A stretch of 63,923 nt of DNA, filler included, from Choristocarpus tenellus KU-1152 (Eukaryota > Protista > Phaeophyceae): the NCBI GenBank assembly GCA_964200185.2. It is 10 parts of 10 records of this genome, joined end to end, with 100 filler letters (N's around TTAATTAATTAA, not from the genome) between each part and the next. Parts side by side here need not be neighbours in the genome. Positions count along the whole stretch, not along the records: positions 44,604 to 54,642 come from CAXNAD020003188.1; 9 more parts are not named here. One strand, given 5' to 3'. Shown piece after piece: positions 44,436 through 54,828 of this stretch. Under the pieces are notes generated by a model. It was not told where the DNA came from. It saw only the letters and a program-made list of their open reading frames with translations, and searched no databases. Each line of letters opens with the position of its first letter. Positions within the stretch are counted from its first letter, which is position 1. Both the position numbers and the translations under genes were made by a program.

Positions 44436-45283
44436 GACCTAAAGTATCTGGGGGGGGGGGGGGGGGGGGGGACCCCAAAGGGGGGGTCTTTTGAAAAAAA
44501 AAANNNNNNNNNNNNNNNNNNNNNNNNNNNNNNNNNNNNNNNNNNNNTTAATTAATTAANNNNNNNNNNNNNNNNNNNNNNNNNNNNNNNNNNNNNNNNN
44601 NNNAAAATTTGTTTCCCCGAACGGGACCCCCCCTAACACCCCCCCCCCCCCCCCCCCCCCCTGATACTTTGAGCCTGTGTGAGCAGCATGGGGTCAACTC
44701 TGGTCACCAAATATTACATCCGATCTAGTTTTATCATCCTATCCATCCCAATAGGATATATGCTATCAGGATCAGGATTTGGGGAGGTCAAGTAGTTACC
44801 CGATCCAATACCTAATTGTGAATGTGGATCTAGTCCTCTGTCAGGCCCTATGGACGGACACTGCGTGATGTCCCAACACAGTGTTCTGTCTGTTATGGAG
44901 GGTAGAGATAAGAGATAAGATATAAGATATAAGATAGATGGCACTGGCCGCAGGGAGGAGCATGCTGAGGAAGGGGAAGGGGAAGGGGGGGGGGGATTTC
45001 TAATTGACCGGTGCATATCCTGAAAAACTCGAAAATTTGATACAAGGGACACTCAGATTCCTTCACTGAATCAGCTTGTGGTGAAAGGGGCTAAGGCATT
45101 GGCTGCCTCAAGGGAAGGTCAGGATATCTCAAAAAGGCGTCAACTTGAGAAAGAAGGTAGTACAGTAGATACAGTCCAGTAGCTTCCAAGGCTTCGGATA
45201 AGGAAATAGATACAAAGTTAGTGAGCCAATTTTGGTCCAGAGAGATAGCTCTCAGTACTGAAAGGGCAAGCAAGGGTGGCTTT

Positions 45284-47073
45284 TCATTGTCTGAGAATGC
45301 TCTGAAGTCCATCTGTGGCGCTCTGCATAACTTTGGAACCAATCTGCAGTTCTTGAGGACGATAAATGGCATACCATTCAAGAGTGTGAAAGGTTAGAAA
45401 TCCTTCTCTTTCCAACTTTTTTTTTTTTTAATACTGCTTTTCCGCAAAAAAATGGATCGGATTAAAAAATATATATATATCAAGATACGATTGAATATTG
45501 AGCTGACACAACGGTACAAGTCTTGGCTGGGTTAGCCACTAAAGTGAACATGCTTCTAGCTTCCAACTCCAAATCTTTATCATCTACACAAGCTTAGCCT
45601 TCTCAGCAAATTTAGCTTTGTACCGTATATGAAGATATGACACAATACTCACAGTTGCTTGGCTCCCTTTGCTTTCGCTTTTTCTCCTCTCCACCCAGAA
45701 CTGACAGTCCCACATGCGTGGGCACCTTCCTCCCCGGCATACACAATCGCTTTCTGTACTCCCTCCCACAGCCCATGCATCTTCAAAAGCTACTTCGAGC
45801 TCTTCAATCTCCAACCTTCGTGCAGATCCTTCGGAAAATACGACACGACGCACCCATGACAGTTTTGATACCAAGCAATGCAACTAACGTACAGGCTATC
45901 GGGAGTACAGGAGATGGCCTAGAAACCTCAGATTTGGTCAAATTATTACTCCCAGAAGGTTTCTTTGAGGTTTCTTTGAGCTTTGATGAAACAGTTTGAG
46001 CGATCCACCATGTAAGGATAACCACGGAAAATGAGGTGTCAAATCCACAGTCATGGTAATGATAATAAGAGCGTCCATTGTGGCCACCACTGTTGGTGAA
46101 TTGTGAAACGCTACACCATGCCGTAGCTTTGTGTCAAAAGATTTCTAGCACCTGACTACTAAAAAACCTCAAGTAGTTGCGACCACCTACTACATCAACT
46201 AGATTGTGAAGATGCGATGGAATCAGTCAAACGAGAGAAGCGAATTCCTCGACACGCCATTGAAATCCCCAGGCCGTAACCAGCACTCTGATCGTTTCAG
46301 GTTATTGTTCTCGTCTTGCTTTTCGACAACTCTTTCTCGCCCAAAATCTTAGGTATCTTGCCACACCAGGTCGTACAACTCACCAAAAGGTTGAAGCTCA
46401 GCAGTGTCAATGTTGACTTCGCCAAAAAGGAGTTTCGACAGTGAATCTGCCTTATCGTGACTATGCCAATCTAACACCGTCCCACCTGTGGAGAGGCGGG
46501 GTATGTAGCAGAAACACCAAATGTGGGGCTTTTGTCACCAGAGTTCAGAAGCCATACCACATCGAGTGCATTTTGGTAGATTTGCATCATTCCTGCCAAC
46601 CCCGATACACTGGGAATTGAGCTCACGTGGCAACACCAGTACACTCATGGACAAAACATCGGGTACATCTGCCACCATTGACCTAATGCAAGAAGAGAGG
46701 GTGGGCAGGTACGGGAGGTGAAGAGAAGATTGCAGTATAGGACCGTTAGTGTATTCACCCGCATTTAGGGCGGAATACAAACCCAATCGGAGAACCTATG
46801 GGGAACGATCAAGGTGAAAGAGAGGGAGATACATCTATTTCACAAGGTATCCTCTCACCTCATAGGTATCCTCGCTTTTTCCCAGGCTTGTGCCTGTGGA
46901 AAATGCTCTGCTTCCACTTCAAGTATCAGGGACTCAACCCCAAGCAATAAGTCCATTCGAGGTCTGTCGGTGATAGGCAGTGATGTATGAAGCTGATCAA
47001 ATAAGTGCTGAAGAACATTGGGACTTCCACTCACAGTCAGCGCTGCGGCAAAAGCGGTGAACGGGAGCCTCAT
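45284..47073 (-). CDS. Uncharacterised ~225-aa Cys-rich protein, divergent from the CHAT-STAND gene
   Basis: Phase-compatible GT-AG model: 47073-46859, 46682-46558, 46485-46384, 45828-45653 and 45343-45284 (TGA). Donors GTGAGT/GTGAGA fall just before in-frame stops. Product includes LPKCTRCGGTVLDWHSHD and DCVCRGGRCPRMWDCQFW. The start may lie further upstream (about 47236). Confidence 0.5.
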
Positions 47074-47318
47074 ACGTATAGGAGGTGTGACTGAATGAGA
47101 GGTAACAGAATATGAAATTGATACTATCTAGATAGCCCTATAGCTTCATGTTCCCAGCTCTGGGGCTTTGTGCGAACAACTCTAACGAATTTTGTATGTG
47201 ATGCCACTCAAAACCCATTTTGAGTTCTCTATCCATCCACTTGTACAACTGTTTCACAGTATTAGGACCAAGAGGGCATACTAGAACTAGAGGTACATCC
47301 TTCCCAAGGGGAAGTTCA

Positions 47319-50300
47319 ATGAACTCTCCCCGTCTGGTACATCTCTTCACTGCGCCCTTAGTGCGCGGAGACTGTCAGGAAGGGGATGACGGCCACCAGA
47401 GCAGCACAACAACCCTTGTTCCAGTGGAGGAGTTAGACTATGAGATGGAGAGGGCAGCAATTGTGAAGTGAGTAAGCCTCTGCCATCTATGGGGTTAGTA
47501 TTTTCCTTGTTTTTGATGGTCTTGAGATGATCTCAAGTCTGAGACTGAACTTCTCACCCTTAACAGCGCGCTTTCTCTTCCCACTTTCCACAGAGCGCTG
47601 GACAGTGGACACCGACGTATCCTGTACAAGTCAGAGGTTGGAAAAATAAGCAAATTCTTGCTATGTTTGACAGGTTGCCGGGTCATGCACTTAACATGGA
47701 ATGGAAGCAAGGAGCAAAGGCAGGTGCGATTTCGATGGCCAAGAAACTATTTATTGGTAACTTCAAGATACAGTAGCAGGACCAAATTAAGGCCATGAGG
47801 TACATTTTGTTGGACCCTTCGATAACGTACACTTCCGCGGATCCAACTAACGCAAAACTGTGGGGTCGTGCAACTACCCGTGAGCAGGTGCCTTGCGAAG
47901 ATGACGAGGGATGCTTCTCTCCAATAAGTGAAGAGGATTTCCTGGCCTCTTGCACAGGAAAGGTTTGTATTTACCACTGTGTCCATGAGTTTAAACCGTA
48001 TACACGGATTTCCTACTTGCTTGTGTTCGTGAGTCTAGGAAAACTTATGTAAGCTTTATTATTCAATATGCATTCTAGTACTCACCAAATCCTAATGAAG
48101 TTGGTGAACATGTCAGGTGCCAGAGGTCGTTGTTCTCAGTGGACGTTCTGCAAAAGCTGTTGCCAGGACCTTCATTCTTGCAGGTGAAATCATGTCTGGG
48201 CTGCACCCACACTTGCTGCAAAGTATGATTGAAGTCCTCTTACTGTGGACTGCGCAATGTTGTCGAAAACGATTCGGTTCTATCATTTCAAAGGCAGTGA
48301 GTAGTGTCACAACTCCTCGTGGATGACAGCAACCTTGCCGTGAAGACCTAGAAAATTGTGGCGAGTATACAATAGTACTCTCAACAAGGAGTGACCCAGC
48401 GCCCATACCTAATCTTTGTGATCCTGTAAAGGTATAAAGCATGTGGTAGCAGTGGAAAGAAGTGCTGCTATGGAGGAGTTGACATTGGGGTTTACTAAGA
48501 CTTTTTATGAGGAGCTGCTGCAGGGGTTCACACTTCAGGATTCCTTTGACCAGGCTCTACGCAGGTGTGCTACCTTAAAAAACCATCTTTTTTAGTGGTG
48601 TACAACTGCAATAGAGGAGGAGCAACTGTTGCAGAACCTGTCATTGGCATCATCATCATTGACTTTACAGTATTGCACTGCTTGTTTCCCCAATCCATTG
48701 GCAGTTAGAAATATTTATTGGAGAAGGTATTCACATGTCTAAGCGTCATCTAGTCATCCTTACCATTTGTGTGTGTCAATGCCTGTCTGCTGACCAATAT
48801 GGTTGATGCGGTTATTGTAGTCCATAGTATGCCTATCAAGTATCTTCGCCACTTCTTGAATGTACTTCAAAGCAGTGTAATGTAATAGCTTGATTGATGT
48901 TTCAGGAATGATACACCCACTGCAAAAGTTGTCAGATTAACCTTCCTCGTGACGGTCTCTTCACACGTATTATCCATTTACACGATTCTTTCTATGATGC
49001 AAGAAGAGCTTCTAGTTGCCCTTGCTGTTTAGGATCTTAGACCTACTTCAACAACTCAAACCTTCATCTTGACCAAAACATGCACCCAGGCTAGCATGTG
49101 GGGCCGGCGCTCCCTTCGCTCTTCTTCCTGAGAAGGGTGACCACTCCGTCACCCTCTTTGATGGGATTGATGCTGGCCAGTACATTGATGAGACCCCCAG
49201 TCTTCCAATCAATCGATGTGATCCTGTGTCTTCCAACTTCCTAGGACAAGAGGTATGAGGTGCTGCTGTTGCAAGTACGTTGTCTTTTTGAGTCTCTGGT
49301 CTTGCTAGTTGAACGACTTATTTGCACCCTTGAGAGGAAAAAAGGGCTGAGGTGTTTGTTCTAGTTAGAGGACAAAAGGAGGTTGCGTCACTTTGCCCGC
49401 TGATCAATGGGAGATGAAGGTGACTAATCTAGTTTTTGGCATTTGGCGTTGACGCTTGACACCTGCTGGAATTCCTGAAAAGGTCCAGGTCCATGAGACC
49501 TTCAAGCTAATGAGGAGGAAAACGCAGGTCATCTGTGTCAAGGGCCCATCAGGAATCGGAAAGACTGAGGTACGGAGGTGTGGGGTGGGGTGGGGTGGGG
49601 TGGGGTGGGGTGGGGGCTCAGGTTAGATGAGGGTTGGAGACATCTGTACAAATTTTGCAATGTCTTTCTGCTGTACCCTGTACCTCCACAGCTTTTCTTG
49701 TCCCGTTGAAGATAGTTTTGGACCCTCCTGACGTCCATCCTTGTCGTCGAGTTTTTTTTTTTTTTTTTTTAATGATGCACAATTGACAAGCCTTGACTCT
49801 GCGGCGTGTACACGACGAAGGTAGCGCTGCGTGCCTGTGCCTATGCGAGAGAGAGACACACGTTTGGTGACATCTTCTTTGTTCCCCTGGGGGAAAGGAA
49901 GGGGATGCCTGCTGCAGTCTCAACGGTCGAGGTCGTAGGGTGCATAGCAGAAGCCTTTGGTTTTGAGCCTCAGGTGATGGAGTGGAATGATCCCCCCCTG
50001 ATGCATCAGTCTAGGTTTTCGTCACCTGCCTTTTACTTGCCTGTCGTGTCGTGCGTGTTGTTCCTCCTCCTCCTCCTCACCCTGTTATTCCTTTACCTCT
50101 GCGAGCGCTCGGTTTTACGAGGAATGGCCGGTCCCTCTAGTCCGGATAGCCTATCGGTAGGGTAAGTAACGCCTACGTCTCGACAGGTTGGTTTAGTAAT
50201 CACTTTTTGCTTGTGGTGAATTGGAAGAAATCGCGAGTACTGGGTTAGGGTTAGGTTTAGGGTTAGGATTGAACCTATAGCCCTAACCCTAAGTGCCTTG

Positions 50301-52571
50301 AAAATCTCGATTTGTTTCATTGTAATGGACAGACACGGTGAAGTGCGTGGGGTGGATGAAGGTGATAGGCTATGAAGGTGATAGGCTATGAAGGTGATAG
50401 GCTATGAAGGTGATAGGCTATGAAGGTGATAGGCTATGGCGATAGGCTATGCGGTGGGTGAGGGGTGACTGGAGTCTCTAGGATATTTCGATCTGAGAGG
50501 TCACTTCTGTGGCCTTCCGTCTGTTCCAGAAGCAACGTGTCTCCTGGACCCAATATCTGAGAAAGAAAAAGAAAGAAAGACCAGTGCCCGTGTTTTGTTC
50601 AAGAAAGGGTTGTTATCGTATTTTGCGTGTGGAAGGTTTTAACGGCCATCAGGCCGTTAAAACCTCGAAGTCTCCAGGCGCAATGGCCCACGAAAGTTAG
50701 TCAAGCATATTTGTAGTAGTAGTAGCCAGCCTGCTGTGGATGGAGACACTTTGGCAGCGAGTGGTGAGACGTAAGACCTTGTGGTCAATGGTCTCCCCCC
50801 ATGCTCTGTCAAGGGTGCTGCTGCTACTAAAAAAACAAAAGCAAACCATGGTTGTATTTCGGTGTTGATTGTTTTGACCAATTGGATTGATTGTTTTGAC
50901 TAATTGGATTGATTGTTTTGACTAATTGGATTGATTGTTTTGACCAATTGGATTGATTGTTTTGACCAATTGGATTGATTGTTTTGACCAATAGAAACGG
51001 TCGCAGTTCACAACACTTTCCGCATTTGTTTGCTATGTTGATCTGTTGGTGCTCCTGATCGTCGATGCATGCATGCATATATCATGTATATATATCATAT
51101 ATATTTGTATCATGTATTTATCATATATATATCATGTATATATATCATGTATAAAAAAAAGGATTCAAGGTTTCATCTGGATGGTCTCTTGGATTGCATC
51201 CGTATGCGATGTGCTAGGACCAACGAACCCTGCTTGGCTCTCCTGGATGGATGTTTGCCTTGGCTAATAAAGGACTCGAGGTAGGAAGGGGCTCAAGGAC
51301 GTGTAACAGTTGACGTTGGTGGTGCAACAGTGAGCAGTGAAGTCCTTGGTGGGAGGAGGTTTTGTTGATACCGTGCGATGAGCAAGGGGTTCCAACTCCA
51401 ATGAATTTTGTCAGGAGGTACAGGATGCATGCACCCAACCCAGTCTTGTCTTGTCTTGTCTTGTCTTCGCCTTGTATTCTGGATTGCAATGTGTTGGAAG
51501 ATACATATCAGAGTGGTTTTGAGTGGAGAGAGGTGTCGAGTGAGGTGGGCGGGAGTAGACTCTGGGTATGGCTTTGATGTTTTTGGCCTGGAGTAGTGGT
51601 GATGTTTCCACAACATGTAGCAACAGGAATCGATCCTCCTTTGATTTTTTTCCAGGAACAAGATCAAGCTGTCTTCGTTTGTGGAAAAGCTGCGGCAGCG
51701 GGTGTCGAAGCTGCAGGTTTTGGTTACGGTGGTGACACAGGTATATATACCTATATATGTATATATACCTATATATACATATAACCCTAACCCTAACCCT
51801 AACCCTTTGGTGCTGATTGGAAATCGTGTCCGCGTTGAGCTCACTTCCTTGATGATCTATCTGAATTCATTTTGGGTGTGTACCTACCATAGCAGCTCAG
51901 TCACTCAAGTAAGTCAATGCACCATGATATATATATATATATATATATGTATATATGCTGACAGGATACCCTCCGCAGGTGGGTATCCCAGGGGAGAAGG
52001 TTGTCACTGTTGGGAGGCTGGAAGATCTGTCAGCGGCCGAGCTCTTTGTCTCAAGCGCTCAGCGTGAGGTATGAACATAACCTTTCAACTGCTTGTGCCC
52101 TTGCCCTTGCCCCTGCCCCTTCCCCTGCCCTTGCCCATCTTTTGTATGAAAGGCCGCGCTCTGTGTATTTTTTTCAGGTAGGCGATCTGAAGTTGGCCCT
52201 GAGTACTTGGTACTTGGAGGTGCGTTTTAGTATTGCATGGGATAATGTGAAGAGTGTATGGACTCTGCCTGTAGTTGATGCTGGTCTGTGGGGAGATAAA
52301 GTGTGGTTATGTTGTGAGCGATTGCTCTTGTAGACTGTGAATCGTTTAGTCAGTGCTTGAAAGTAGTTTAAGAATTGAGAGCGTTGCCCTGGCCCCTGGG
52401 GGTACCGATAAAGAGGCGTCCTTTGAGTTGAGGTGTTACTGATGTCTGTTTTCTCATTGTGCTCATCAGGGCCAATCTCTGGTGCATCTTGTGTTCTTTA
52501 TTATTATTATTATTTATTTTTTTATTAGTATTATTATTATTTTTATTGTTAGTAGTATTAGTATTATTATT

Positions 52572-52606
<35 letters not shown>

Positions 52607-53091
52607 TTTATTATTATTATTTTTGATGTGCGACAGGTTAGGGTGCCGGAGATGAGAGGGGGCATGGTCTTGAATGGACCCAGAGTACTGCATGAGGACT
52701 GCATACGACTATTTGCTGGTAGCAGGGTGATCAACTCGCTAGGTGATGACATACTGTGACGCCCAGAATATATTAGCAAAACCCCCTATGTTCTGGGCTG
52801 GCGCTTGCACCCACATTTGAGTTGGAAGGCGTAGTGTGTTCTTGACGTCGTTGTTGGTGTAGGTGTTTGTTATAAAGAGTCCAGCGCACACTAGAGCAAG
52901 TACAGCGTTTTGATGCCTTTTGTGTAGACTACAGGGTGACAAACTGATGAATGCTTTGCACTGCTGGTACACTTCTCTGCAGGTGGCCATCCGGGAGCGA
53001 TCACTGGTGTGAGTGGCATGCTGGAGGGAAAGGACTTACTCCAGGATGAGGACGATTTTGTGCTGAACATCATACCTCAACAACACCAAAG
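47319..53091 (+). CDS. CHAT (caspase-fold) pseudo-protease fused to a STAND/NB-ARC-like P-loop NTPase (NLR-like); 3' end not in contig
   Basis: Thirteen phase-compatible GT-AG exons: 47319-47467, 47594-47723, 47888-47962, 48117-48183, 48432-48564, 49090-49252, 49483-49569, 49821-49973, 51162-51280, 51656-51740, 51979-52068, 52637-52742, 52983-53091. CHAT-like: LVHLFTAPLV...LDYEMERAAI, GCRVMHLTWNG, VPCED, VVVLSGRS, AGIKHVVAV, FTKTFYEELLQGFTLQDSFDQA. STAND: FLGQE, VICVKGPSGIGKT, CLALLDG, LQVLVT, LEDLSAAELF, LGGHP. Confidence 0.85.
50356..50451. repeat. Minisatellite, 16-bp unit ATGAAGGTGATAGGCT x5 plus degenerate units
   Basis: Direct tandem units in intron 8 of the CHAT-STAND gene. Confidence 0.95.
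50865..50992. repeat. Minisatellite, 22-bp unit TTGATTGTTTTGACYAATTGGA x ~5.8
   Basis: Direct tandem units; contains the palindrome CCAATTGG. Confidence 0.95.
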
Positions 53092-54828
53092 GTGAGAACT
53101 TGTTGGGCAAGTAAGTAAGGGTGTTGTTGTCCTCTCCTCTGCAATGTACTATGAGCTAGCTGCCTGAACTCTGGTTGTGGCAGGCGATCGTGTGGAAGCT
53201 TGTAGACATTTAAATGATAAAATGATAAAATGTTTGCAGAGCTTTGGTCTTCTCCTACAAATCTGAAAAATGTGATGGCCACCTTCATACCAAGGGATAC
53301 CATTCAAGTGTCAAAATAATACTATATATTGTAGTTGATGTCATAATTATAATAATAATTAAGTCTCAAAACAAAAGATATATATATATATATATCTTAT
53401 ATGATACTACATTTTTCCTGAAGTGATTGAAAAGGTGGATGTGTCTCTACCCGGGAGGAGGTAGGGGGTGAGATATGTTTTTTGATATGTTTTCTTGTTT
53501 TTGTTTTTTGACAGATTGCTGAAACTGATTTTCTGTCAATTGCTTATGTAATGCTTCTGTGTGATAAAAAAAGTGGGGGGGGGAGGGGGGCGGAGCCAAA
53601 GATGATAACCCTACTTTGATACAGTTACTGGTCTTGTCTGGTAAGCCAAGACCCCCTAGTCAATATATTGAGAGGTGGGGTGTTGTTGGATGGATGACAG
53701 GTGGTTCTATAGAACCTATCCCCAGTATCAAGGTTATCTTTTTGTAGAAGTTGAGCAACGTTATGAAAGGTTGACCTGTGTGTGGAAGGAGTATCACCAT
53801 CTATCTCCCTGTATCTTTTGAACCAAAATACTGGACATGTACTGAGGGGGTGGTTACTATCCTCCGTTCACTTGTCAGCAATCTTTTAGAGGCCAAGAAG
53901 ACTTGAAACGGGGGATCAATACCCTCCAAGTATTTCCCTTTTTTATATCGCTATGTTGCAATCGGTCACCGTGTAAGGATCCCTCACTGTGTTCTGTCCT
54001 TTATGGCATGCACTCTAGGTGCTCGATCTGTAAGAGCTCGCCAAGCCTGTTGGTGGGATTGATTGTGATCGTCAAGGTTGTATTGATAGTGATCGTCAAG
54101 GTTGTATTGATTTTTGTCGAATGTAGCTTAAGGGTTAGGGTTCACTCTGCAGTTTCAATAAAGTGGTTACGCTTTTTTCAAAAGTCCCCCACCCCCCCCC
54201 GTATGGTTGTTCTGTTGGGATCTTAAGTGTTTCTTTGTGCACTACGTATATAATTACACCAACTGAGTTCTTCTCACTCTTTTTCCGTTTAACTCTTTTT
54301 CTACACTGTTCCATTTTGTTAGTATCAGTGCATCTCACCGATGTGTACGTGTGAATCCTACAAGCCACCTTTCAATCAGAAGTTGAGAACTCCTCACACT
54401 GCTGATACAAATAGCTGTGCTGTGATAGTCATCTTCCGACAAAGGTACACCTTTAAGGTGACCTTCCTTGAGAAGATGTACTTCTTCAAGGTCTCATACC
54501 GTGTGACATCTGCATTTGATTGTTGATTGTTGATTGTTGATTGACCCATCTTTCGCGTTCCTGCAAAAAATGCCAACTACCTAGCCTGCTTGTTGTAAAG
54601 TAAAGTAAAAGAAGGGCATGTTGGGTCAAAGTATCTGGGGGGNNNNNNNNNNNNNNNNNNNNNNNNNNNNNNNNNNNNNNNNNNNNTTAATTAATTAANN
54701 NNNNNNNNNNNNNNNNNNNNNNNNNNNNNNNNNNNNNNNNNNGTTTGTGCGTGCGTAGTGTGTGTGTGGGGCGCCTGTGGGGGGATTGGGGGGGGGGGGG
54801 GGGGGGGGTCGGGGGGGGGGGGGGCAGG

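Follow-up and report, generated by a model that had tools for sequence, protein, structure and literature searches.

A predicted CHAT-type pseudo-protease fused to a STAND-like NTPase in the brown alga Choristocarpus tenellus

INTRODUCTION

In bacteria and fungi, proteins that join a CHAT domain to a STAND nucleoside triphosphatase (NTPase) have been recognized as receptors with an active protease. As far as is known, the bacterial CHAT-STAND proteins keep the His/Cys catalytic dyad, and they usually carry tetratricopeptide repeats (TPR) or other repeats. Here, we describe a gene of the brown alga Choristocarpus tenellus which is predicted to encode a fusion of this kind in which both dyad residues are replaced. 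The gene lies on contig CAXNAD020003188.1 of assembly GCA_964200185.2, which occupies positions 44604 to 54642 (10,039 bp) of the window, that is, of the whole 63,923-nucleotide stretch of joined contigs that was analyzed and to which all coordinates below refer; the only gene annotated on this contig spans 47319 to 50165. Current phylogenies place Choristocarpus in the Discosporangiales, sister to all other brown algae; the NCBI taxonomy files C. tenellus under the Sphacelariales. The Phaeoexplorer paper likewise describes the Discosporangiales as an early-diverging order.

Several related systems have been described. Nucleotide-binding leucine-rich repeat-type receptors (NLRs) with an N-terminal CHAT peptidase have been reported in fungi, some of them clustered with gasdermins (PMC8851545, PMC10197012), and NB-ARC-TPR and ROCO genes have been reported in brown algae (PMC3341825). 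The SAVED-CHAT protein of type III CRISPR systems was described as an active protease switched on by cyclic nucleotide-driven filament formation. In the literature that we searched, no brown-algal family with a CHAT-NTPase fusion or with an SH2 domain is described.

RESULTS

According to our analysis, the locus is likely to be a functional but incompletely annotated gene, whose 3' part is lost beyond the contig edge, and to belong to a brown-algal family whose members would combine a catalytically dead CHAT domain with a STAND-type NTPase and, in the relatives, an SH2 domain. The gene model was rebuilt from the three forward frames and splice contexts and comprises 13 exons on the + strand (47319 to 53091), with every intron following the GT-AG rule and with consistent phases throughout. 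Exon 8, used as the query against 1.84 billion representative proteins, retrieved the C. tenellus protein CAM9422873.1 (here P0001; 382 amino acids), whose residues 1 to 319 correspond to exons 1 to 8 with identical splicing, so that an independent gene call stands behind these exons. Past exon 8, this protein reads into intron 8 until a stop at position 50165, adding 63 residues which occur in no relative; the public model is therefore truncated. The Sphacelaria rigidula protein CAM9736479.1 (P0005) is partial too and covers exons 5 to 8 only. The exon 8 protein search and a profile search seeded with exon 8 yielded short open reading frames as well as this partial protein, and their contigs, among them loci from Logan and the European Nucleotide Archive (ENA), served as the relatives (L001 to L014). 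Exon-by-exon tblastn comparison revealed colinear, exon-confined homologs of exons 2 to 13, with E values of 1e-4 to 1e-12 per exon and identities of 41 to 78%. The 13-exon model, which an initial annotation had proposed from this DNA alone, is thus supported by the splicing of P0001 for exons 1 to 8 and by the exon-limited homologs for exons 2 to 13, and each of the motifs named there (HLTWNG, LSGRS, FLG, GPSGIGKT, LALLDG, VLVT, L...A.ELF, and GHP) was recovered in its place.

The N-terminal domain was assigned to the CHAT family and to the caspase fold by sequence and structure. Pfam CHAT (PF12770) scored 29.6 bits on P0001 and 32.3 bits on its residues 1 to 215, above the gathering threshold of 24, with residues 112 to 186 matching profile positions 195 to 266 of 289. 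An AlphaFold model of residues 1 to 240, computed with a small family alignment as input, reached a predicted local distance difference test score (pLDDT) of 63 and a predicted template modeling score (pTM) of 0.64, with a core formed by residues 41 to 88 and 107 to 210. When this model was compared with the Protein Data Bank (PDB) by Foldseek, the five best matches were all chains of the SAVED-CHAT filament 8tl0. The VIA exhaustive structure search likewise placed 8tl0_A at a Z score of 12.6 over 157 aligned residues, well ahead of the next rows, which comprised separases (Z 7.3 to 7.9), gingipains, the CHAT-bearing DdvA, MALT1, legumain, caspases, metacaspases, and c-FLIP (Z 5.5). The nearest Atlas clusters were all CHAT clusters, several of them being CHAT domains fused to STAND NTPases (features 0.91 to 0.92; structural template modeling [TM] scores 0.5 to 0.8). 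The Pfam score and the fold matches therefore agree on a caspase-fold CHAT domain, as the initial annotation had claimed. Other searches were less informative: PDB sequence searches with exon 5 and with P0001 residues 1 to 215 returned nothing specific, a word search of proteins gave no candidate for exon 5 and, owing to its length window, only P0001 itself for P0001 residues 1 to 268, and Pfam scans of single exons yielded nearly nothing, apart from weak P-loop matches on exon 7.

Both catalytic residues of this domain are replaced. In the AlphaFold model, a strand formed by residues 80 to 85 ends just ahead of Asn86-Gly87, and a second one formed by residues 122 to 127 ends just ahead of Arg128. 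In clan CD enzymes, the catalytic His and Cys sit directly after these two strands, the former as His-Gly after the third strand and the latter as Ala-Cys after the fourth. The first of these positions falls within exon 2 (47594 to 47723), whose strand ends in HLTWNG (47688 to 47705) with Asn86 (47700 to 47702) in place of the His, and the second within exon 4 (48117 to 48183), which encodes the strand VVVLSGRS, where LSGRS (48135 to 48149) places Arg128 (48144 to 48146) where the Cys would be; both exons match P0001. A weak profile alignment sets VVVLSGRS against LVVLNACC of 8tl0, with Arg128 on the first Cys, which supports, together with the model strands, the Asn and Arg that had been read at the dyad positions from the DNA. 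According to the SAVED-CHAT paper, H375 and C422 form the catalytic dyad, and the first Cys of LNACC would be C422 if the index offset were 20; the two dyad positions are 42 residues apart in the Choristocarpus protein and 47 in SAVED-CHAT.

The same losses are found in the relatives. Homologs of exon 2 in L002, L004, and L006 all read HFTWNG, and the motif at the Cys site reads LSAAS in L001 and LTAAS in L002, L004, and L006, so that the His is missing in all three readable relatives and the Cys, replaced by Ala, in all four. The loss is therefore old and family-wide: it seems probable, as part of the overall reading given above, that both residues disappeared before the family diversified, the His having been replaced by Asn and the Cys by Ala, or by Arg in Choristocarpus. 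Among the best-conserved segments of the domain are those surrounding the old active site, namely, LTGCRV.H.TWNG and a PE.VVL stretch that leads into the altered motif at the Cys site.

The remaining CHAT exons are consistent with this picture. Exon 1 (47319 to 47467) contains the start codon and encodes the first strand and helix of the domain; it is identical to P0001 residues 1 to 50, of which residues 1 to 37 have low pLDDT, and no homolog of it was found by tblastn in the other loci, including L002, L004, and L006. Exon 3 (47888 to 47962), which matches P0001, encodes an acidic loop and a helix and has weak but colinear homologs, VMFE[DN]..G, in the same three relatives. The Pfam CHAT match begins in exon 4 and includes exon 5 (48432 to 48564), which encodes the C-terminal strand and helices of the domain (FY..L..G.T...SFD); exon 5 has homologs in L001, L002, L004, and L006, and the Atlas lead obtained from it also pointed to CHAT. 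Exon 6 (49090 to 49252) comprises an LLP..GDHSV..F segment and then a linker ending in F-L-G-Q-E; in its homologs (L001 to L004, L006, and L013), the linker ends in [YL]LGRE or RGRE. Seven loci share the segment that follows the CHAT core (49121 to 49213), LLP..G[DE]H[SW][VI][ST].F, for which there is no match to a known family.

Selection on the domain was estimated from Nei-Gojobori counts summed exon by exon. Between L004 and L006, the CHAT exons gave a ratio of nonsynonymous to synonymous substitution rates (dN/dS) of 0.15, at a dS of 0.40, and the NTPase exons one of 0.20; in the other unsaturated pairs, comparisons of more than 90 codons mostly gave 0.10 to 0.20. Between the relatives and the Choristocarpus gene, synonymous sites are saturated (proportions of differing sites, pS 0.64 to 0.88 and pN 0.30 to 0.39), so the constraint, evident overall, is not assignable to the Choristocarpus branch alone. 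Relative to other pairs, the CHAT exons of the Choristocarpus gene are no more diverged than its NTPase exons. These values agree with the earlier view that the pseudo-protease domain is maintained.

The CHAT domain is followed by a P-loop NTPase in which the motifs FLGQE, GPSGIGKT, LALLDG, VLVTVVTQ, AAELF, RLFAGS, and GGHPGAI occur in an order conserved across the family, the first of them reading F/L-G-R-E in the relatives. Exon 7 (49483 to 49569) carries the Walker A motif GPSGIGKT (49543 to 49566), which fits GxxGxGK[ST] and is found as G..GIGKTE in eight loci, and exon 8 (49821 to 49973), encoding the NTPase core that follows the P-loop, has homologs of 41 to 50% identity in all 14 loci. 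The putative Walker B motif LALLDG (51234 to 51251) lies in exon 9 (51162 to 51280), whose homologs in L002 to L007, L009, and L012 to L014 read LL[VL]VLDGC. Exon 10 (51656 to 51740) ends in the strand VLVTVVTQ (51717 to 51740), at the position of sensor 1, and has homologs of 57 to 78% identity in L002 to L006 and L012 to L014. Exon 11 (51979 to 52068) encodes an L..L.AAELF helix (homologs 63 to 70% identical), and exon 12 (52637 to 52742) encodes RGGMV.NGP...C.RLFAGS (homologs 48 to 54% identical). Exon 13 (52983 to 53091) contains GGHPGAI (GHPGA at 52985 to 52999), which is conserved in position and by eye resembles the GLPL motif, and is represented in L002, L004 to L006, L012, and L014. 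The Walker B and sensor 1 positions were assigned by motif order rather than by profile alignment. A P-loop profile retrieved generic P-loop proteins only from the PDB, exon 7 alone gave weak Pfam matches to nSTAND5, nSTAND3, AAA_16, and NB-ARC, and one Atlas structural row with a TM score of 0.80 belonged to a bacterial NB-ARC/NACHT family. We therefore refer to the domain as STAND-like, meaning a predicted P-loop NTPase with a STAND-like motif order.

Since exon 13 has a phase-2 end, the gene must extend further in the 3' direction; the phase-2 donor, AG|GTG, is kept in L004, L005, and L006. Five further conserved exons follow exon 13 in these three relatives and, in part, in L012; the junctions between exons 13 and 16 are in frame and in the same phase in L004, L005, and L006, as is the junction between exons 16 and 17 in L004 and L005. 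Exon 16 (L005:4025-4207, L004:8997-9179, and L006:8603-8785) encodes GTFLLRLSS.PGALV, including the arginine of the FLxR motif. Taken alone, it scored 22.3, 21.2, and 20.8 bits against Pfam SH2 (threshold 21), and its profile matched 39 PDB sequences, every one of them an SH2 protein. Exon 17 in the relatives ends in HLFPDTPKHEAL; the tail L-F-P-D-T-P-K-H-E-A-L would point to an SH2 domain of the STAT type, which was not confirmed, as the exon 17 profile matched no STAT protein in the PDB. No leucine-rich repeats (LRR), TPR, or WD40 repeats were seen in the 3' exons of the relatives. The predicted architecture of the family is therefore a dead CHAT domain, a STAND-like NTPase, a linker, and an SH2 domain.

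In Choristocarpus, the 1.55 kb that follow exon 13 (53092 to 54642) contain no homolog of exons 14 to 18, the best scores being no better than those of shuffled queries, and no recognizable LRR, TPR, or WD40 repeats; open reading frames from this interval and from both strands of 44604 to 47318 had no family matches. The contig starts with a long C-run (44630 to 44663) and ends in a G-run (54633 to 54642). The assembly probably broke at such low-complexity sequence, which would explain the missing 3' exons.

The junction across intron 8 (49974 to 51161; 1,188 bp, + strand), which the annotated protein enters as far as position 50165, was examined separately. Homologs of exons 9 to 13 are present in up to about nine loci. 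Past the Gln that closes exon 8, the relatives diverge at once, and their exon 9 starts four residues before a conserved His, which fixes the junction at 49973 | 51162. Accordingly, an extension of exon 8 to 50012 was rejected because of the divergence right after that Gln, an exon 9 acceptor at 51169|51170 was rejected because of the exon 9 start in the relatives, and an additional exon of 14 amino acids at 52178 to 52219 was dropped since it has no homolog in the relatives' loci.

Intron 8 contains two tandem arrays, a 16-bp unit repeated 5 times (50356 to 50451) and a 22-bp unit repeated 5.8 times (50865 to 50992), and such arrays swell it to its present length, compared with about 200 to 800 bp in the relatives. 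Telomere-like repeats occur in the same intron (50244 to 50300, with TTAGGG-type units followed by their complement, CCCTAA) and in intron 10 (51788 to 51806), and a (GTGGG)x7 array (49580 to 49615) starts 10 bp past the exon 7 donor. Unlike all other loci, the ENA metagenome contig L009 shows no homolog of exon 6 or 7 in the 2.1 kb (positions 1 to 2133) that precede its exon 8 homolog, which could be due to a longer intron or to a rearranged copy.

DISCUSSION

In the reading that we favor, the NTPase would act as a nucleotide-dependent switch and oligomerization module, and the pseudo-protease, which would keep conserved strands around its former active site and be unable to cleave, would offer a binding or scaffolding surface that NTPase oligomerization brings together. 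The C-terminal SH2 domain would supply input or localization through a phosphotyrosine ligand. Several observations weigh against parts of this reading. The scaffolding mechanism is one that we infer, and the SH2 domain lies outside the window in Choristocarpus, where its presence is extrapolated from the relatives. The CHAT model, at a pLDDT of 63, is of middling quality only. The weakest point of the gene model is the acceptor of intron 8, which goes unused in the public annotation: it follows an A-run and has no pyrimidine tract, and this may be why the annotation missed it. As to the NTPase, AAA_16, NACHT, nSTAND, and NB-ARC matched at E values of 0.004 to 0.3, all below the Pfam thresholds, in scans run on exon pieces, the spliced reference covering the first third of the NTPase only and exons 9 to 13 being handled singly; the best scores came from the partial sequences P0005 (NB-ARC, E 0.0036, with 17 bits where the threshold is 23.5) and P0001 (AAA_16, E 0.0072). 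Moreover, LALLDG offers one acidic residue where hhhhD[DE] would have two, with LDGC found family-wide, and VLVTVVTQ ends in Thr-Gln, with Gln in place of the sensor 1 Arg throughout the family. Hence, of the STAND NTPase claimed initially, the fusion of CHAT to a P-loop NTPase with a STAND-like motif order stands, while the strand termed sensor 1 lacks its usual Arg. With a single-acid Walker B motif and no sensor 1 Arg, the protein may bind nucleotide but hydrolyze it slowly or not at all.

We also considered that the Choristocarpus gene is truncated or decaying, its product being either the annotated 382-amino-acid protein, with a dead CHAT domain and a P-loop and an end within intron 8, or nothing. 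This would fit the stop of the public annotation at 50165, the A-run ahead of the intron 8 acceptor, the swelling of this intron by tandem and telomere-like repeats, and the lack of homologs of exons 14 to 18 in the 1.55 kb past exon 13. Nevertheless, we regard it as unlikely, since exons 9 to 13 still have open frames, their splice sites, and every conserved motif, and their identity to the relatives (49 to 54%) is on a par with that of exons 2 to 8 (45 to 51%), whereas long disuse would have eroded them. A different role was suggested by the initial annotation, namely, that of a decoy or c-FLIP-like regulator which would restrain or activate an active CHAT-STAND paralog in the same alga. Pseudo-proteases often regulate active kin, and the protease-like domain of c-FLIP is among the structural matches (Z 5.5); however, every family member with a readable N terminus is dead at both dyad positions, the exon 8-seeded profile search revealed no relative with a different N terminus, and no active paralog was found among the relatives. 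Any active partner that exists could also be a protein other than a CHAT-STAND paralog. We deem the proposed regulator role improbable. It is more improbable still that the domain works as a hydrolase through noncanonical residues, for example Cys78 and His82 in LTGCRV.H.TWNG. Both are invariant in Choristocarpus, L002, L004, and L006, within the best-conserved part of the domain, but they lie in or just before the strand of residues 80 to 85, which ends ahead of the canonical His position. His82 is presumably the first, noncatalytic His of the CHAT H-x-x-x-H-G motif, and we know of no clan CD enzyme that works through such residues.

The reading of the locus as a functional gene for a pseudo-protease joined to a STAND-like NTPase differs also from the initial proposal of an NLR-like receptor whose sensor domain was still to be found, since the 3' part of the relatives is an SH2 domain and not the LRR, TPR, or WD40 repeats that would form the sensor of an NLR. 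A more specific and rather doubtful extension would be that phosphotyrosine read by the SH2 domain gates the STAND switch, whose oligomers would cluster the pseudo-protease into a platform recruiting or regulating a separate executioner, such as a metacaspase. If true, this would tie phosphotyrosine signaling to an apoptosome-like assembly in a lineage far from animals and would represent an undescribed kind of hub. As the input to a STAND switch, an SH2 domain would be unusual, and it would count among the few pointers to phosphotyrosine readers in brown algae. A dead protease as constrained as its NTPase would furthermore provide a clean natural example of a caspase-fold domain retained for some function apart from cleavage. 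Given the truncated annotations in Choristocarpus and Sphacelaria, surveys based on annotated proteins, as well as NB-ARC-TPR searches, will miss this family.

The architecture itself is known from other systems. The bacterial CHAT-STAND fusions, in which CHAT is combined with AAA_35, nSTAND1, AAA_16, iSTAND, or NB-ARC and which are common and mostly cyanobacterial, have the same order, an N-terminal CHAT domain followed directly by a P-loop NTPase, whereas the algal gene is eukaryotic, has 12 introns and a dead dyad, and belongs to a family in which the relatives have a C-terminal SH2 domain. Of SAVED-CHAT (8tl0) and TPR-CHAT/Csx29, both from type III CRISPR systems, the former gives the best structural match, with the strand-LNAC segment aligned to strand-LSGR, but the algal protein has Asn and Arg at the dyad positions and an NTPase as the partner domain. 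The fungal CHAT-NLRs likewise combine, in a eukaryote, CHAT with an NTPase, there of the NOD type; gasdermins are the substrates of those fungal CHAT domains that have been studied, and the fungal proteins have TPR, WD40, or ankyrin (ANK) repeats, while in the algal protein there is no dyad and no repeats were seen. The brown-algal NB-ARC-TPR candidate receptors come from the same group of organisms and would share an NB-ARC-like NTPase with a motif that by eye resembles GLPL, yet they lack CHAT, and shuffled TPR exons form their ends, where the CHAT-NTPase relatives have no TPR and an SH2 domain instead. Finally, c-FLIP is likewise a caspase-fold domain under selection without its nucleophile, but it is a recent paralog and heterodimer partner of caspase-8, whereas the algal family lost its dyad long ago and has no known active partner. 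What is new here, compared with the known CHAT-STAND architecture, is its dead-dyad algal version.

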